Sequence record: MK250021.1
Length of the DNA: 64,000 nt
Strand: one strand, 5' to 3'
A program made the translations under genes and the position numbers. Under the pieces are notes generated by a model. That model was not told the origin of the DNA. It worked only from the letters and a program-made list of their open reading frames with translations, and ran no database searches. Shown piece by piece: positions 36,381 to 52,089 of this stretch (position 1 is the stretch's first letter; each line of letters starts with the position of its first letter).

Positions 36381-36865
36381 NNNNNNNNNNNNNNNNNNNN
36401 NNNNNNNNNNNNNNNNNNNNNNNNNNNNNNNNNNNNNNNNNNNNNNNNNNNNNNNNNNNNNNNNNNNNNNNNNNNNNNNNNNNNNNNNNNNNNNNNNNNN
36501 NNNNNNNNNNNNNNNNNNNNNNNNNNNNNNNNNNNNNNNNNNNNNNNNNNNNNNNNNNNNNNNNNNNNNNNNNNNNNNNNNNNNNNNNNNNNNNNNNNNN
36601 NNNNNNNNNNNNNNNNNNNNNNNNNNNNNNNNNNNNNNNNNNNNNNNNNNNNNNNNNNNNNNNNNNNNNNNNNNNNNNNNNNNNNNNNNNNNNNNNNNNN
36701 NNNNNNNNNNNNNNNNNNNNNNNNNNNNNNNNNNNNNNNNNNNNNNNNNNNNNNNNNNNNNNNNNNNNNNNNNNNNNNNNNNNNNNNNNNNNNNNNNNNN
36801 NNNNNNNNNNNNNNNNNNNNNNNNNNNNNNNNNNNNNNNNNNNNNNNNNNNNNNNNNNNNNNNNN
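36381..36865. other. Assembly gap or masked region (485 N)
   Basis: Run of N. Confidence 0.99.
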
Positions 36866-45857: not shown

Positions 45858-46991
45858 ATGTTAAAGTCTATTAAAATACGAATATATCCTGATAATGTTT
45901 AGAAAGAATTTATTTCTAAACAGTTAGGTTGTTGTAGACTTATATATAATAAATTATTGGATTATAAGAAGTCATAGTATGAGTAGAATAAACAATCTGT
46001 TTCTTTATCACAGTTAGGTAAATATTTAACTAATTTAAAGAAACTAAATGAATATTCTTTTTTAAATGATGTTTATTCTTAGTGTTTATAGCAATCTATA
46101 ATGGATATGATTAAAGCATATGATAATTTCTTTAAATTACATAATGGTTATCCTAAATTTAAATCAAAGAAAGATACTAAACAAACATGTAGATTTACAA
46201 ATACTATATTTAAATTTAAGAAAAAGAAAATTAATGGTAATAGGATAACATTAATTAAATAGTTATAGAATATATTATTTAAATGTTCAAAAAGAGATGA
46301 AATATATTTAAATCATAATCAGGATAAAATCCATTTTATTACTCTTACTAAAACATCTACTGAAAAATATTATCTATCTATTTGTATTGAGTATAATATT
46401 TATAAAAAAGAAAAGTTAGATACAGTAATAGGTCTTGATTTAGGTATTAAAGACTTTATAGTAGATTCTAATGGAAATAGATATGAGAATAAACATTTTT
46501 ATAAAAACCAAGAAAAGAAATTAAAGAAATTATAGAGGAAACTTTCTAAAAAGTAGAAAGGAAGTAATAATAGAAATAAAGTTAGAATTAAATTAGCTAA
46601 CGTTCATGAAAAAATAGCTAATCAAAGAAGCACATATTTACATCAAATTAGTTCAAAATTAGTTAACGAGAACCAAGTTATCTGTATTGAAGATTTAAAT
46701 GTAAATGGTATGATGTCTAATCATAAATTAGCTAAATCTATATAGGACTTAAGTTTCTATGAATTTAGACGTTAGTTAGAATATAAATGTAGATAGAATG
46801 GAAGACAATTAATGATTATAGATAGATTTTATCCTTCTTCTAAAACATGTCACAATTGTGGATATATTTATAAAAGTTTAAAATTAAATGAACGCGACTG
46901 GATATGTCCACATTGTAGATCTCTAATAGATAGAGATTATAATGCTTCATTAAATATTTTAACTGAAGGATTAAGACAAATTAATTTATAA
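45858..46991 (+). mobile_element. tnpB: TnpB RNA-guided endonuclease paralog, 377 aa in code 15; no tnpA
   Basis: Same length as and highly similar to 32432-33565; RuvC D/E/D residues intact. Confidence 0.9.
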
Positions 46992-47150: not shown

Positions 47151-47621
47151 ATGAGTTTGTACAAATATCCAAGTATACATGGTTTGAAGGATATTGCAAT
47201 GATTTATAATGATTCTGAATGGGATAATGCAAAACTTAAAGTGTGGGATCCTGAATATCAAAGAGAATATAATATATCATTTACAGGTTCTACAAGACCA
47301 ACTGAAACTGAACCAGGTATAGTAAGTTTCAATATATCAAAAGTAAAAGACGAAAAATCTGCTGATGAAAAATCAATAGATATTTATTTAGATAAAAGAT
47401 TTCCTAATATATCTAAATTAGAGAGAAACAAATATGAATTGATTTTTAGAGCAGGTGTTGAATATGGAAAGAATGTAAGTAAAAAAGATTTACTTAAAGA
47501 ATTATTTAAATCACCATGTGAAAAATGTGGTAGTTATATGATGTCAGATAATTGTATTTGTAATAAATTATATAACTATTGTGATTTTATAGAAGAAATA
47601 AAGAAAAGGATAGAGAAATAA
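47151..47621 (+). CDS. Hypothetical protein with C-terminal Cys cluster
   Basis: ATG abuts the omegaRNA right flank; CEKC...CIC. Confidence 0.6.
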   Translation: MSLYKYPSIHGLKDIAMIYNDSEWDNAKLKVWDPEYQREYNISFTGSTRPTETEPGIVSFNISKVKDEKSADEKSIDIYLDKRFPNISKLERNKYELIFRAGVEYGKNVSKKDLLKELFKSPCEKCGSYMMSDNCICNKLYNYCDFIEEIKKRIEK

Positions 47622-47646
47622 GAATCTCTATCCTTTATTATTTTAT

Positions 47647-48219
47647 TTAATATTCATCATCGTCATCCCATTCATCGTCAGAATCATCATAATCTTCCTC
47701 TTCATCATCAAAATTAGAATCAGAAAGATAAATTTCTTCTATAACTACTTGATTAACTTTGAATACCATAAGTCCTTCTGAAAATTCAAGTTCAATATCA
47801 ATTTCACCATCTTCATTTGCAGGGAATATTTGAATACTTTCATCTTGTTTTAATTCAATTTCAGGTTTACAATAGGCAATATCAAAAATACCTATTGTAC
47901 CAGAATCTACATCATATTTTTGATTTGTCATAGAATCATATGTACCATCGCCATATTGAGTTCCTTGAATAATACCTATAACTTCCTCATCATTTTCAAG
48001 AATTCCATCAGGATATTTCTTTGCACCCCATACATTATCATAAATATCTTCTGTTAAACAATAACATGGATCACCAATAACAAGTGATTCTACATTTGTT
48101 AATGTTACATAATAACGTCCACTTGTTTGTGTATATTTCTCATTAATTGATTTCTTTACAGATTTTGATACTGATTTCATTATACTTTCATATAATGATT
48201 TCTTTTGTTTATTATTCAT
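47647..48219 (-). CDS. DUF4241-like protein with N-terminal LYESIM tag
   Basis: LVIGDPCY, GTQYGDGTY, YDVDSGTIGI. Confidence 0.55.
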   Translation of the reverse strand: MNNKQKKSLYESIMKSVSKSVKKSINEKYTQTSGRYYVTLTNVESLVIGDPCYCLTEDIYDNVWGAKKYPDGILENDEEVIGIIQGTQYGDGTYDSMTNQKYDVDSGTIGIFDIAYCKPEIELKQDESIQIFPANEDGEIDIELEFSEGLMVFKVNQVVIEEIYLSDSNFDDEEEDYDDSDDEWDDDDEY

Positions 48220-48334
48220 AATGTTATGTAAATTAAAAAAATTATTTTTAGTATTTATCTTTTAACAAAGATACATAAAATTTTTTAAATAAAAAAGAGA
48301 TGTAATTTAATTATTACATCTCTTAAATTATTAA

Positions 48335-48637
48335 TTATCCATCATATCCGTATTTACCGAATACATGAACAATTTCACCGCTTTTAGTTGTATAAGATTT
48401 ATCATAAGATTCTAGATCATAATCACCGAAGTAATCATCATATGATTTATATCTCCAGCTATCTTCTGTAATATCTTCCTCTGATATAGAATCTTTTGAA
48501 ACTAATTTATTATGATCTCTATCAAGAACATATGTTCCATTTTTCCATCCATTATATTCATCATCTGATGCAAATGTCAATGAATGTGTAGAACTTGAGT
48601 TAGTTTCAAATACACTTTTTCTTACTTGAATTCTCAT
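48335..48637 (-). CDS. FETNSSSTH-motif protein 4
   Basis: MRIQVRKSVFETNSSSTHSL. Confidence 0.8.
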   Translation of the reverse strand: MRIQVRKSVFETNSSSTHSLTFASDDEYNGWKNGTYVLDRDHNKLVSKDSISEEDITEDSWRYKSYDDYFGDYDLESYDKSYTTKSGEIVHVFGKYGYDG

Positions 48638-48655
48638 TATATATTAATATATATT

Positions 48656-49219
48656 TTAATTACTCTTATAGTATTCCCATGATTTTCCAAAATTTGGACA
48701 ATCCAACTCTTCATCACTATTATCATTACCTGTTGATACATAACTATTATAATCAAACAAATAATTCATAAGTTTCTTTTCATCACTTATAATATCTGTA
48801 AGAAAATCACCTACTTCATTTCCATGATCTATATAACCACTATCTTCTTCATCATCATTATTCATAAATTTAATATAAGTATATTCACTACCATCATCAT
48901 ATTTATGAACTTTAACTTTCATATTAGCAGCATATGGAAATAGTGCTTTAATATTATGTTTTGCAAGAATATCTGTAATTGATTTAATTGCATTATTTAC
49001 TTTATCAATATTATTCCAATAACAACTTGTAATTGCTTCCCATAGATATTCTGCTTTAGTAGCAGTGTCAAAATGAATATCAAAATCCCATCCAAATTCG
49101 CCTTTACCAAATATTACTTTATCAGGAAATTCATTAATATCAGATTTCTTAATAATGGAAATAGAATGTGTTGAACTTGAATTTGTTTCAAATACACTAC
49201 GTCTAACTTGTACTTTCAT
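48656..49219 (-). CDS. FETNSSSTH-motif protein 3
   Basis: MKVQVRRSVFETNSSSTHSI. Confidence 0.8.
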   Translation of the reverse strand: MKVQVRRSVFETNSSSTHSISIIKKSDINEFPDKVIFGKGEFGWDFDIHFDTATKAEYLWEAITSCYWNNIDKVNNAIKSITDILAKHNIKALFPYAANMKVKVHKYDDGSEYTYIKFMNNDDEEDSGYIDHGNEVGDFLTDIISDEKKLMNYLFDYNSYVSTGNDNSDEELDCPNFGKSWEYYKSN

Positions 49220-49243
49220 TTTATTTTATAAAATTAATAATTA

Positions 49244-49909
49244 TTAAATAATATAAATCTTTGGTTTATAATAAGGTGCATAAGCTTCATCGGCATAAGT
49301 AATAGTATTATTATCATCCATAATATTCCAAAAATATTCATTGAATTTTTCTACTGTTAACCAACCACCATTTTCACCAATATTTTCAAAAAACTTTTTA
49401 TTTGTATCTGTATTTTTTGTAAATTCAACATATGAACCATATTCAAGTTGATTCTTAACATCTTGAATATCATACCCATGTTGTTTTGCAATCTTCTTTA
49501 TATACTCTACAAACTTCTTATATACTTCTGTATCTTCTAACCAATCATCATGATTATCCTCAAAATAATGGTTTCTATATTCAGCTCTATTATAATCTTC
49601 AATATAATATGCATTGTTATTTAATTCCATTGCAATATATTGAAGTTTAGCAACCCAATTATTAATGATATAATAAATATTAGTCATTTCATCACCATTT
49701 TCGAAATCAATACCACGAAGAATAAATGTATGTTCTATAATATAATCCTTTGGATTAAATATACCACAGTCCATATTATCCTTATATTGCTCAAAAATAG
49801 CTTTATATACAATATCTTTTACATCATCAATTGTTCCATGTGTAATTTGTAAAGAATGTGTTGAACTTGAGTTTGTTTCAAATACACCTCGTCTAATTTG
49901 TACTTTCAT
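49244..49909 (-). CDS. FETNSSSTH-motif protein 2
   Basis: MKVQIRRGVFETNSSSTHSL. Confidence 0.8.
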   Translation of the reverse strand: MKVQIRRGVFETNSSSTHSLQITHGTIDDVKDIVYKAIFEQYKDNMDCGIFNPKDYIIEHTFILRGIDFENGDEMTNIYYIINNWVAKLQYIAMELNNNAYYIEDYNRAEYRNHYFEDNHDDWLEDTEVYKKFVEYIKKIAKQHGYDIQDVKNQLEYGSYVEFTKNTDTNKKFFENIGENGGWLTVEKFNEYFWNIMDDNNTITYADEAYAPYYKPKIYII

Positions 49910-50409
49910 TAATCTGGTTCTATATAAATTTTTGTATGTTCATGATTTAAATCTTTATCGTAATTGAAATAATCCCTATCAAATATGTCAACTTTTGATT
50001 CATCATTAAAAATATATTCTAACAATAATTGCTCAAAGTCTTCATCTTTTTCATCAAATAGGTCATTAAATACATCTTCATACCCATAGCTATAATTATC
50101 ATATTCTCCCGTTTCTGAAATAAGGAATACACAATTAATATCATATTTAGATAATACTTTTTCAATGCGATATTTAGTAGACATAAAATGAGATAGATTA
50201 TCACCAAATGTCATATAGTCAAATAAGTTATCTAATCTATCTTGAAAATGATTACCTTTATCTCTTTCTCGCCAAGGTAAACCAAATTTAAGTGTAGTTC
50301 CTGCATATAATTTAAGAATTTTATCATCTACAGGTTTTGTACATATAGTTAATGTATGTGTTGAACTTGAATTAGTTTCAAATACACTATGCCTTATTTG
50401 AATTTTCAT
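49909..50409 (-). CDS. FETNSSSTH-motif protein 1
   Basis: MKIQIRHSVFETNSSSTHTL. Confidence 0.8.
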   Translation of the reverse strand: MKIQIRHSVFETNSSSTHTLTICTKPVDDKILKLYAGTTLKFGLPWRERDKGNHFQDRLDNLFDYMTFGDNLSHFMSTKYRIEKVLSKYDINCVFLISETGEYDNYSYGYEDVFNDLFDEKDEDFEQLLLEYIFNDESKVDIFDRDYFNYDKDLNHEHTKIYIEPD

Positions 50410-50432
50410 AATTTTCCTATTGTTTTATATTA

Positions 50433-51317
50433 TTACTTATTATATTTGTTTCTAATAAATTGAAACATTTCATCCATAGTCTTATCACCTATAGGGAATC
50501 TTTCTTTAGAAATTGAATTCTTTGCAAATTCACCCTTTACTAAATCAATATAAAATGTATAACCACCATCATCTCCCATGTAGAATTCATTCCATTCATC
50601 ATCGGACATAATACGTTTTACATCAAGTTGCTTAATTGCTAGATTATCAAAACTTAATACTTTAAACTTCTCCGTAATTTCCTTAAGATTATCAAAGATA
50701 TATTTACGATTTGTTTCAATCATATCATTATGTTCCTTATGGAAATTAACTCCTCGTTGTAAATCTTTATATCCAAGGAGAAGAACTTTAAGATTATGAT
50801 TTGCCAACTTATTAATGTCATCTTCAGATAAAATTCCTACAATAGTATGAAGAACTGTATTAGGAATACTATTCATTTTCTGGATAAGTTCATCAGATGG
50901 TTTTACCAACGAAACACCAATACCATATACGAGTTTATTATCAGACCAATCCTTTAATTTATCATAATTATCAAAGAATTGTTTTTGATTTACTGTAATA
51001 TTAGCAAATACTTTCTTCGATTTAAGGAAATTAAGGAACTTATCAAGATCAGGGTGATCAAGGTCATTACCATTCAATGCAATTTCTGTATATGGATGAA
51101 GTGTATTTATAAATGGATATGCAAACAAGTCACCGTGTTTCCCATGTGGTGAACATCCCTCGTAGCACCACAAACATCCGATTTTACACTTATCTGTTAA
51201 TTTACAGTCTACATTTTCACTATATGCTGGAATAAACTCATCATCATTTGTACGACGAATTTTTGTTCCATCACCCAAAATTGTTACGATATAATTACCA
51301 TTCTTATAACTTGGCAT
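50433..51317 (-). CDS. Radical SAM enzyme
   Basis: CxxxCxxC (CKIGCLWC), EIALNGND, ANITVN, GIGVS; no SPASM CxxC cluster visible. Confidence 0.85.
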   Translation of the reverse strand: MPSYKNGNYIVTILGDGTKIRRTNDDEFIPAYSENVDCKLTDKCKIGCLWCYEGCSPHGKHGDLFAYPFINTLHPYTEIALNGNDLDHPDLDKFLNFLKSKKVFANITVNQKQFFDNYDKLKDWSDNKLVYGIGVSLVKPSDELIQKMNSIPNTVLHTIVGILSEDDINKLANHNLKVLLLGYKDLQRGVNFHKEHNDMIETNRKYIFDNLKEITEKFKVLSFDNLAIKQLDVKRIMSDDEWNEFYMGDDGGYTFYIDLVKGEFAKNSISKERFPIGDKTMDEMFQFIRNKYNK

Positions 51318-51446
51318 AATTTCTTTATTTTAAAAAATTAATAAATTTAAATTTAATATCACGAAGATACATAATTTGTTTATATATAAAAAAGAAAATA
51401 GAGAATATCTAACATTAATTAGTAAATATTCTCTATTTTAAAAAAT

Positions 51447-51944
51447 TTATAATTCTATTATTTCTAATTTATTATAAGGTATTATTCCATTATAAAAATA
51501 TGTTGGATCTATTTCATCTTCAGATTCTTCATCATATATGTTGTTTTGATCTAAAGAAAGTTTATTTAAATCAATATCAGATGTTTTAATTTTAAATACA
51601 ATAATTTCTAATTCTTTTTCATATCGATCTTCATATTCTTCAGCAAACTCTTCAAAATCATCGGAACATTCCAAATATGATTCCGCAACATATTCATCTG
51701 TTGCTAAAAAAACACCATGACTTATATTTTCATATGGCGTATTTTCATAATTCCAAAATCGTTTCTTTGGTATTTTTGCACCTAACCCATTTTTCTTTAT
51801 TGAACGCAAATAACAAGATGGAGTTGCATGATAAAAATATTCAGGTATATTATAATTGATTGTTTCATTAATTGATTTCTTTACAGATTTAGAAATAGAT
51901 TTTATTATATTTTCATATAATGTTTTCTTTTGTATAGAATTCAT
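51447..51944 (-). CDS. ADP-ribosyltransferase-fold protein (Tpt1/KptA- or DUF952-like) with N-terminal LYE tag
   Basis: YHATP...SIKKNGL, GVFLAT...AESY, IVFKI. Confidence 0.6.
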   Translation of the reverse strand: MNSIQKKTLYENIIKSISKSVKKSINETINYNIPEYFYHATPSCYLRSIKKNGLGAKIPKKRFWNYENTPYENISHGVFLATDEYVAESYLECSDDFEEFAEEYEDRYEKELEIIVFKIKTSDIDLNKLSLDQNNIYDEESEDEIDPTYFYNGIIPYNKLEIIEL

Positions 51945-52089
51945 AATTTTACATAAATTAAATTTTATTTTTATATTTATATGATGATATACAATGTAAA
52001 TTTATAATAAATAATACATTAAATAAGACATTTTTATAATTATAGAATATTTAATAATAGGTAAGGTAGAATATTAAAAGATTTAAATT

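Follow-up and report, generated by a model that had tools for sequence, protein, structure and literature searches.

Positions 48,335 to 51,317 of the stretch analysed here (the window, 64,000 nucleotides of sequence record MK250021.1) hold a five-gene operon on the minus strand of the Lak megaphage Prevotella phage Lak-B2/B4/B5: a radical SAM (rSAM) enzyme is followed by four proteins with a shared N-terminal segment, referred to below as the tag (Table 1). All five genes start with ATG, stop at TAA and hold no in-frame TAG, so TAG recoding in the window, which a stop-codon reading test did not decide, does not matter here. Gaps between genes are 18-24 nt, and the genes for the 166-aa and 221-aa proteins overlap by one base (TAATG). 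The four tagged proteins are 75-85% identical over residues 1-20 and 100% identical over residues 9-18 (VFETNSSSTH), against 14-26% over the rest. The identical residues are encoded by different synonymous codons (2-5 synonymous differences per pair in the first 20 codons), which points to selection on the protein and not recent gene conversion. The motif occurs exactly four times in the window and four times in the whole 549,839-bp Lak-B2 genome, where a reversed-pattern control gave 0. The promoter variant at 51362 is a real repeated element: TTATGTATCTTYG has 7 matches in the window against 0.65 expected, and 0 of 100 shuffles reach 7. Strong hairpins flank the unit on both sides. The observation made in a preliminary description of the sequence, that of an rSAM gene heading four genes with a near-invariant N-terminus and no TAG, is therefore confirmed, with one correction: that description had the proteins diverging after the tag, but they do not all diverge freely, since the 187-aa protein is a full-length member of a large conserved family (the long type) and the 166-aa protein is a degenerate copy of it.

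Table 1. Features of the rSAM operon and its borders (window coordinates)
Coordinates	Strand	Feature	Supporting observations
51395..51439	-	Terminator-like hairpin plus T-run ending the upstream 165-aa gene; marks the 5' boundary of the unit	RNA fold -16.7 kcal/mol, z = -4.99; 0 of 200 shuffles fold as well
51362..51374	-	Promoter-like repeated motif TTATGTATCTTCG, about 45 nt upstream of the rSAM start codon; promoter function inferred	A second copy at 48266-48278 precedes the next gene
50433..51317	-	Radical SAM enzyme, 294 aa; N-terminal three-strand beta-meander (residues 3-23), cluster motif C44-x3-C48-x2-C51, no cysteine after residue 55	phrog_16999 'Fe-S oxidoreductase', 5.4e-35 over residues 28-271; 5583 homologues; AF2 model pLDDT 88.8; nearest solved structures SkfB (Z 17.8) and SuiB (Z 17.1)
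49909..50409	-	166-aa tagged protein, degenerate paralogue of the long type; GYIDH replaced by GYEDV, TGNDN and C-terminal KGN motifs absent	hhalign against the long-type profile: 137 columns, probability 98.9, E 2.1e-17
49244..49909	-	221-aa tagged protein; only residues 1-25 shared with the long-type family; Lak-clade type ending ...KPKIYII	hhalign aligns 25 columns only; orthologues of 223 and 227 aa in Lak-like contigs L013 and L014
48656..49219	-	187-aa canonical long-type partner; invariant R6, F10, E11, T12, N13, S14-16, H18, D131, H132, T163, N165, D166, N167, K185, N187	325 homologues at full-length coverage, none with a Pfam domain; phrog_28997, 1e-19 over residues 2-168; AF2 pLDDT 92.4, but 52 for residues 1-10 and 75 for residues 11-20; no PDB fold match
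48335..48637	-	100-aa canonical short-type partner (tag ... TxSGExVxVFGKYGYDG at the C-terminus)	Only residues 1-28 align to the long-type profile; short-type consensus built from 55 sequences; counterpart P0121 in L002, an unrelated contig, ends ...FGYYGYDG
48295..48324	-	Intrinsic-terminator-like hairpin (12-bp stem, T-run) closing the five-gene unit	Terminator scan: 3 sites against 0.5 expected; fold -13.7 kcal/mol, z = -5.81

The first gene belongs to the radical SAM superfamily. Its cluster motif, CKIGCLWC (CxxxCxxC), is conserved among homologues (C51 is invariant, and C44 and C48 are kept at 90% or more), the AF2 model aligns to rSAM structures over 220-276 residues with Z up to 17.8, and homologues carry PF04055. 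Where superfamily members have a SAM-binding GGE-type motif after strand 2, the Lak enzyme has ALNGND (G83 and N84 invariant, D85 near-invariant), a variant that, judged from sequence alone, may plausibly bind SAM; the Salmonella phage Arash homologue has the canonical LGGGEP. The best structural matches are peptide- or protein-modifying enzymes (SkfB Z 17.8, SuiB 17.1, EpeE 15.2, ChlB 14.3, anSME 14.1), although viperin scores 14.5 and MoaA 12.5, and the margin between peptide maturases and nucleotide-acting rSAMs is only 2-3 units. Sequence searches of the PDB with the rSAM, its profile and the long-type profile found nothing significant: a marginal hit of the rSAM C-terminus to T4 holin T (6pxe, E 9.4e-4) weakened to 0.12 with the profile and is treated as chance. 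The phrog_16999 label is only generic, and phrog_28997, which the other three tagged proteins match mainly through the tag, has no assigned function.

The long-type protein models confidently but resembles no solved fold. Foldseek against the PDB gave no hit at E <= 0.001 (E > 0.1), and VIA-align against 48,161 chains gave a best Z of 3.3. BFVD returned one uncharacterised Myoviridae protein, and a language-model atlas search gave no named neighbour. The ESM Atlas returned only viral hypothetical clusters plus one weak row, a cluster of 261-aa proteins with a Tad2-like domain that matches at TM 0.56 over 134 residues. Several resemblances of the tag were considered (a flavodoxin-like FMN loop, a PP-loop/HIGH nucleotidyltransferase motif, metallophosphoesterase motifs, and pyruvoyl or Ntn-type self-processing), but the confident model matches none of those folds.

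The pairing of the rSAM with tagged proteins extends far beyond Lak. In 77 of 80 IMG/VR viral loci holding a relative of the 187-aa protein, an rSAM homologue lies within 10 kb, usually under 2 kb away and in the same orientation; the one exception with full flanks (locus L061) carries the rSAM about 23 kb away on the same contig. Conversely, 77 of 78 loci centred on the rSAM have tagged ORFs within 6 kb. In a second collection, of genome contigs, 63 of 78 loci have the rSAM within 6 kb, and of 5 of the 15 exceptions that were re-examined, 4 have it elsewhere in the same assembly. Most apparent exceptions are truncated contigs or carry the partner elsewhere in the same record or assembly. Many of the viral loci come from one metagenome (3300045988), so these counts are not fully independent. 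Common occurrence of the motif proteins without the rSAM had been named in advance as grounds for rejecting a link between them, and it was not seen. The cassette is present in Microcystis phage Ma-LMM01 (gp130 with gp128) and in the unrelated contig L002, and it often sits among replication and repair genes. No other gene family is near-universal in the neighbourhood: the next best is in 25 of 81 loci, while PNK-like kinase, DNA methyltransferase, NifS-like desulfurase, Thg1 and a second rSAM each occur in only 13-20 of 81, many from one sample.

Fusions give independent support. At least 102 protein clusters (446-823 aa, 99 of them carrying PF04055), including Arash gp146c, join the long-type domain to the N-terminus of the rSAM, and nearly all keep the tag about 10 residues from Met1. 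Elsewhere a single rSAM accompanies tandem arrays of up to nine or ten tagged genes. This breadth bears on one reading of the shared N-terminus, that it is a sorting signal (a capsid-targeting or compartment-import peptide, for example, with V-F-E as a protease site) with no chemical link to the rSAM. The two genes flanking the Lak operon share a different N-terminal 27-residue segment, so shared N-termini may be a Lak habit, and V-F-E resembles the (L/I)-x-E prohead-protease sites of T4. However, the tag tracks the rSAM across unrelated phages (Lak, a cyanophage, a Salmonella phage and many metagenomic lineages) and is fused to it, the Glu is Ala in all listed fusions, and the invariant residues lie after the supposed cleavage site. 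A sorting role is already disfavoured and very unlikely.

Taken together, these data are best explained by a phage-specific two-component radical SAM system. What the analysis establishes is the coupling: one rSAM is near-obligately encoded with one or more proteins that begin with M-x(4-5)-R-x-x-[VT]-F-[EA]-T-N-S-S-S-x-H, the core pair is the rSAM plus the long-type partner, extra paralogues that share only the tag form tandem arrays, and the fusions mean that the two components act together physically. What the tag does is inferred, from sequence and predicted structure alone. In the favoured but tentative view, the N-terminal tail is the part that enters the rSAM active site: a beta-strand-like K-x-Q-[IV]-R segment would dock, perhaps on the conserved N-terminal three-strand sheet of the rSAM, placing the invariant T-N-S-S-S-x-H loop next to SAM and the [4Fe-4S] cluster, and the 5'-deoxyadenosyl radical would abstract a hydrogen from one of the Ser/Thr residues. 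The resulting modification, of undefined chemistry and cellular target, would mature the long-type protein, whose other invariant Asp/His/Asn/Lys residues look like an active site built around that loop, and would also mark the accessory paralogues. Consistent with this, the 221-aa and 100-aa proteins share only 25-28 residues with the long type, one rSAM accompanies arrays of up to nine or ten tagged genes, AF2 leaves residues 1-15 of the 187-aa protein unstructured (pLDDT 52-75, against 87-98 for the rest of the model), and the nearest structural neighbours of the rSAM are peptide maturases. The change of E11 to Ala in the fusions fits a docking contact that is not needed once the domains are joined. 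Three complex predictions of the rSAM with 4Fe-4S, SAM and the 187-aa protein scored 0.87, 0.02 and 0.30, with a median below the 0.32 mark, and carry no weight either way.

The main rival, somewhat less likely and itself doubtful, is that the tagged proteins are not substrates but subunits or domains of the rSAM enzyme. The tail would dock into the rSAM and supply part of a composite active site, or simply anchor the partner, while the variable C-terminal parts bind different small-molecule, nucleotide or nucleic-acid substrates. The fusions fit this view equally well: enzyme-substrate fusions are unusual (fusions more often join subunits or successive enzymes), and the fusion loci carry no extra tagged genes. 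The long type is also present in the great majority of loci, and its invariant D131/H132, T163/N165/D166/N167 and K185/N187 are typical of a ligand-binding or catalytic site, so it could be a catalytic or specificity domain. The fused forms, moreover, give weak viperin-family hits (pVip 1e-12), viperin-like enzymes score Z 14.5, and the cassette often sits among replication and repair genes. On the other hand, nine or ten alternative subunits for one enzyme is hard to rationalise; the 221-aa and short-type proteins share nothing but 25-28 residues with the long type; an invariant run of small polar residues is not what docking peptides usually look like; and all hits to nucleotide-acting rSAM families are far below their cutoffs.

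A further possibility, which seems unlikely, is that the tag is the family's own phosphate- or metal-binding loop (a Ser/Thr-rich anion nest following strand 1) and that the tagged proteins are independent enzymes or binders acting before or after the rSAM on a shared metabolite, without direct engagement of the tag by the rSAM. S16-H18 starts the first core beta-strand of the AF2 model, the residue composition (E/T/N/S/H plus DH and NDN) resembles phosphate- or metal-binding sites, and the Tad2-like match hints at nucleotide binding, although it is a single weak row. Against this, the loop is kept unchanged on at least three unrelated C-terminal scaffolds, including the 100-aa protein, which is not expected for a loop that needs the rest of the active site, and the fixed distance from Met1 and the low-confidence tail fit recognition by a partner better.

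Comparison with described systems shows partial resemblances. RiPP-type maturases with leader-bearing precursors (SkfB/SkfA, SuiB/SuiA, EpeE(YydG), PqqE/PqqA, MftC/MftA) are the best structural neighbours (Z 13.7-17.8), and there too one rSAM sits next to one or several tandem genes that share a conserved N-terminal segment and vary downstream. Here, however, the partners are proteins of 92-273 aa and not short peptides (the long type is a confident globular fold), the conserved segment is small-polar (TNSSSxH) and not a typical leader, and the partner is often fused to the enzyme. The rSAM has no recognisable PqqD-like winged-helix RRE domain (its N-terminus holds only the three short strands and no helices) and no SPASM/twitch cysteines for auxiliary clusters: its only cysteines are at positions 38, 44, 48, 51 and 55, and NCBIfam SPASM models match only the first ~100 residues of the rSAM core, at 14-45 bits against cutoffs of 265-850. 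All NCBIfam maturase hits are far below cutoff. In the anaerobic sulfatase-maturating enzyme (anSME/AtsB), an rSAM converts a Ser/Cys in a short conserved motif near the N-terminus of a folded enzyme into a catalytic residue, one maturase serves several paralogous enzymes, and the Asp/His/Asn/Lys invariants of the long type resemble a sulfatase-like active-site inventory, though this is a resemblance only. The motif F-[EA]-T-N-S-S-S-x-H is not C/S-x-P/A-x-R, the partner model matches no alkaline-phosphatase-superfamily or any other solved fold, and the rSAM lacks the two auxiliary clusters.

Glycyl-radical enzyme activases offer another parallel: a small rSAM acts on a folded partner, and a short paralogue sharing only the target motif (the GrcA/YfiD 'spare part' protein) coexists with the full-length enzyme, as with the short and long types here. 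Some homologues are annotated 'organic radical activating enzyme' by JGI. Yet the motif is N-terminal and not C-terminal, there is no invariant glycine in the tag or elsewhere in the long-type alignment (no RVxG), and PFL-AE and NrdG family hits are marginal (E 0.0014-0.022, below cutoffs). Viperin and MoaA-type nucleotide-acting enzymes, the relevant comparison if the partner-subunit view is correct, share the broad rSAM fold group, but the prokaryotic viperin model NF038283 scores 32-38 bits against a 180-bit cutoff and on the fused forms only, and these enzymes have no known tagged partner proteins.

The interpretation offered in the preliminary description is thus partly supported. Its core idea, that the rSAM and the motif proteins form one functional system, holds, whereas its proposal that the rSAM modifies the Ser/Thr/His motif remains an inference and its formylglycine analogy fails. 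Its suggestion of diversified effectors, perhaps anti-defence, has no support: there were no PADLOC or anti-defence family hits (NCBIfam and PADLOC gave none for any tagged protein and only generic sub-threshold rSAM hits, and the Lak rSAM has no PADLOC hit), and the long type looks like a conserved core partner with enzyme-like invariant residues, not a variable effector. Literature searches on the motif, on radical SAM enzymes in Lak or Ma-LMM01 and on phage rSAM anti-defence found nothing relevant, and the Arash paper does not discuss gp146c.

Both families are large (about 5,600 rSAM clusters at 90% identity, and 5,883 tagged-family clusters at 50% identity with E <= 1e-3) and effectively restricted to phages and phage-like contigs from gut, rumen, freshwater and other habitats, and neither has a Pfam, NCBIfam or literature description that could be found. 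Two culturable phages carry the system, Ma-LMM01 in split form and Arash in fused form, so it is accessible at the bench. The near-obligate pairing, the fusions and the invariant tag give a directly testable hypothesis for new radical SAM chemistry on protein substrates, or for a new two-domain rSAM enzyme, and the long-type partner appears to be a new fold. It is possible, though rather less likely than not, that this is a previously undescribed kind of protein maturation, in which a SPASM-less phage enzyme would install a new modification or protein-derived cofactor on the invariant N-terminal loop of folded proteins: one maturase would serve a core enzyme of novel fold plus arrays of up to about ten diversified tagged proteins, and in some lineages the enzyme would be fused to its own substrate domain and be self-maturing.

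The region compared is 100% identical to Prevotella phage Lak-B2, B4 and B5, which are megaphage genomes of about 550 kb assembled from baboon faeces, 98-99% identical to the other Lak-B genomes, and about 73% identical, over half its length, to Lak-A and Lak-C. The window has a G+C content of about 25%. The observation in the preliminary description was borne out, as the five minus-strand ORFs are exactly as it had reported them: a radical SAM (rSAM) gene followed by four genes whose products share an N-terminal tag. All five start at ATG, end at TAA and contain no TAG; they are separated by 18-24 nt, and the 166/221-aa pair overlaps by one base. A repeated promoter-like motif lies upstream of the unit (7 copies in the window against 0.65 expected), and where its copies were inspected (48266 and 51362) it lies just upstream of a gene start and just after a terminator hairpin; it is a likely phage promoter element. 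Strong terminator-like hairpins flank the unit (z = -5.0 and -5.8). The four downstream proteins are 100% identical over residues 9-18 (VFETNSSSTH) and 75-85% identical over residues 1-20, but only 14-26% identical afterwards; the synonymous codon differences inside the identical stretch point to selection on the protein sequence and not to recent copying. The tag motif occurs four times in the window and four times in the whole Lak-B2 genome, all in this operon. The two genes flanking the operon share an N-terminal segment of their own (MNxxQKKxLYExIxKSxSKSVKKSINE, about 22 of 27 residues identical) and little else, and so form a second pair with a shared N-terminus and divergent bodies in the same stretch.

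Coordinates of features in the window and in related contigs
Sequence	Coordinates	Strand	Feature
Window	47600-52000		Region compared with the Lak genomes
Window	51362-51374		Promoter-like motif TTATGTATCTTYG upstream of the unit
Window	6179, 13360, 30694, 31016, 44695, 48266, 51362		Copies of the motif (T/A)TATGTATCTT(T/C)G
Window	50433-51317	-	rSAM; residues 207-288 are its C-terminal part
Window	47647-48219	-	Flanking gene, 190 aa; matches phrog_20074 (4.5e-14), which has no assigned function
Window	51447-51944	-	Flanking gene, 165 aa
Window	46101-46991	+	Short ORFs that look like pieces of one TnpB/IS605 OrfB-like gene, which may be interrupted by stops or read with TAG recoded
Window	46812-46991	+	59-aa ORF among these, with the C-terminal zinc-ribbon pattern CHNCG...CPHC...DRDYNASLNI
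Window	36381-36865		Single run of 485 N (masked or a gap)
L240 and L255 (Fibrobacter-binned contig NZ_JBGUHR010000060.1)	L240 283-7000		Array of tagged genes
L003	6838-7638		Ma-LMM01 gp131
L002	10533-13202		Thg1, RlaP and PARG-like genes
L091	13468-16912		Stretch noted for Cas3 and a Cas7fv-like protein

The four tagged proteins are not four equally free-diverging effectors. The 187-aa protein is a full-length member of a large family of proteins of about 155-210 aa, here called the long type: it has 325 hits at 90% clustering, a profile search found 5,883 cluster representatives at 50% identity with E <= 1e-3 (of which 2,439 reach E <= 1e-10), and it matches phrog_28997 at 1e-19. Beyond the tag, the family has invariant D131-H132 (GYIDH), T163/N165/D166/N167 (TGNDN) and K185/N187 (a YYKGN C-terminus). 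The 166-aa protein is a degenerate long-type copy that aligns over 137 columns (hhalign E 2e-17), but in which the DH, GNDN and KGN residues are replaced. The 100-aa protein belongs to a second conserved class, the short type, with a consensus of tag ... W.GEL ... LETF..YTTPSGD..VAFG.YGYDG, and shares only 28 residues with the long type. The 221-aa protein, a Lak-clade type, shares only 25 residues with the long type. The tag is therefore a portable N-terminal module on at least three different bodies.

Whether tagged proteins commonly occur without the rSAM was the test that the preliminary description itself had proposed for its interpretation, and the pairing was examined in both directions. 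First, of 80 IMG/VR loci retrieved with the long-type profile, 77 hold a homologue of the Lak rSAM (36-98% identity) within 10 kb, nearly always within 2 kb and co-oriented. Two of the three exceptions sit near the end of the recovered sequence, in records only 9% and 11% complete, and the third (locus L061) has the rSAM about 23 kb away on the same contig (L172/L173), split into two pieces at the cluster-binding CxxxCxxC loop by an insertion of about 1.3 kb. Second, 75 of 78 loci retrieved with the rSAM profile hold tagged ORFs within 6 kb; two of the remaining three have a FESNSSSTH variant, and the last has only 787 bp of upstream flank. In an independent collection (species-representative genomes and MAGs, mostly gut and rumen), 63 of 78 loci have the rSAM within 6 kb, and of five of the 15 exceptions that were re-examined, four have it elsewhere in the same assembly. 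Many of the viral loci come from one metagenome, so the counts overstate independence, but the spread across Lak, a cyanophage, a Salmonella phage and many MAG lineages does not depend on that sample. The cassette also occurs in the cultured Microcystis phage Ma-LMM01 group, where gp130 is the long type and gp128 the rSAM, and in an unrelated 158-kb contig (L002) as long type, short type and rSAM in that order. No third gene family is close to universal in these neighbourhoods. A class II aminoacyl-tRNA-synthetase-like protein (gp131, annotated histidyl-tRNA synthetase) sits next to the cassette in Ma-LMM01, Thg1, RlaP and PARG-like genes follow it in L002, and Thg1 recurs in 14 of 81 loci. 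This may indicate a tRNA-repair neighbourhood, but it is not consistent across loci; occasional neighbours such as Thg1, RlaP, PARG, a PNK-like kinase and a NifS-like desulfurase are likewise suggestive but inconsistent.

In some phages the two partners are a single protein. Salmonella phage Arash gp146c (476 aa, annotated "methyltransferase") is a long-type domain (MYLTQIRYGFATNSSSSHS ... GYIDH ... GGNDN) joined to an rSAM domain (CDLACKFC). A length-restricted search with its N-terminal domain found 102 clusters of 446-823 aa, of which 99 carry PF04055, and nearly all of which keep the tag about 10 residues from Met1 and keep the GNDN motif. In these fusions Glu11 is Ala, and the three fusion loci examined contain no additional tagged ORFs. 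A huge-phage-like contig carrying the fused rSAM (L091, binned as Pacearchaeota) also encodes Cas3 and a Cas7fv-like protein a few kb downstream. The fusions, together with the enzyme-like invariant residues of the long type, pull towards a partner-subunit model, that is, a two-domain enzyme whose true substrate is something other than the tag; this reading is the main rival, only somewhat less likely than the tag as substrate site. A census of 158 loci shows the long type in the great majority: long type + rSAM + short type is the commonest pattern (69 loci), followed by long type + rSAM + another class (19) and long type + rSAM alone (16). The core is therefore long type plus rSAM, split or fused, and the other tagged paralogues are optional expansions. 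The Fibrobacter-binned contig has nine tagged genes (136-224 aa) in a row about 3 kb from the rSAM, plus a tenth beside it; there position 17 of the tag varies (M, A, T, E) while F-E-T-N-S-S-[SA]-x-H is kept.

The predicted structure of the long type is confident (pLDDT 92.4, pTM 0.87), but residues 1-10 score 52 and residues 11-20 score 75, and the first core strand starts at S16. The model matches nothing solved: Foldseek gave no hit at E <= 0.001, and VIA-align against 48,161 chains gave a best Z of 3.3, although it does match other viral hypothetical proteins. A missing match does not prove a new fold, but none is known to these libraries. The rSAM model (pLDDT 88.8) has an N-terminal three-strand meander and the usual partial barrel. 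Its best matches are SkfB (Z 17.8, acting on a peptide), SuiB (17.1, peptide), EpeE (15.2, peptide), a viperin-like enzyme (14.5, nucleotide), ChlB (14.3, peptide), BlsE (14.2, small molecule), anSME (14.1, protein), PqqE (13.7, peptide) and MoaA (12.5, nucleotide). The rSAM has no cysteines beyond residue 55, and so has no SPASM or twitch cluster, and curated family models hit only the generic core, far below their cutoffs. Its C-terminal part gave a marginal sequence hit to the soluble domain of T4 holin T (6pxe_T, E 9.4e-4), but with a family profile this dropped to E 0.12 and it is probably chance. Several rSAM homologues (protein entries P0128, P0131, P0132 and P0406) carry inteins (PF14890/PF07591), and an 823-aa fused form hits an intein-containing rSAM model; inteins usually home to conserved sites of important enzymes.

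Functional and physical coupling of the rSAM and the long-type domain is as well supported as comparative genomics allows and can be taken as shown, while that the rSAM acts on the tag is an inference. Unrelated bodies carry the same invariant, strictly N-terminal, small-polar tag; one rSAM serves arrays of tagged genes; the tail is not packed in the monomer model; and the rSAM resembles peptide maturases. These observations are best explained by the rSAM engaging the tag directly, and the most economical reading is that the tag is the substrate site of the rSAM, as the preliminary description had proposed. This reading is favoured only tentatively. A pathway-neighbour model, in which the tagged proteins would act before or after the rSAM without direct engagement of the tag, is less likely than the partner-subunit model, and a sorting signal is very unlikely; these readings together do not exhaust the possibilities. 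The interpretation in the preliminary description is thus partly supported: its substrate site remains the leading hypothesis, but nothing here indicates the anti-defence role that it had suggested.

No Pfam, NCBIfam or PADLOC family was found for the tagged proteins, the PHROG has no assigned function, and no paper in the literature searched contains the motif or discusses this rSAM. The general logic of an rSAM with tagged protein partners is known from sulfatase maturation, glycyl-radical activation and RiPPs, but membership of each of those systems fails at a defining feature. The phage system therefore appears to be a variation on that logic, with a real, if tentative, chance of being new protein chemistry.
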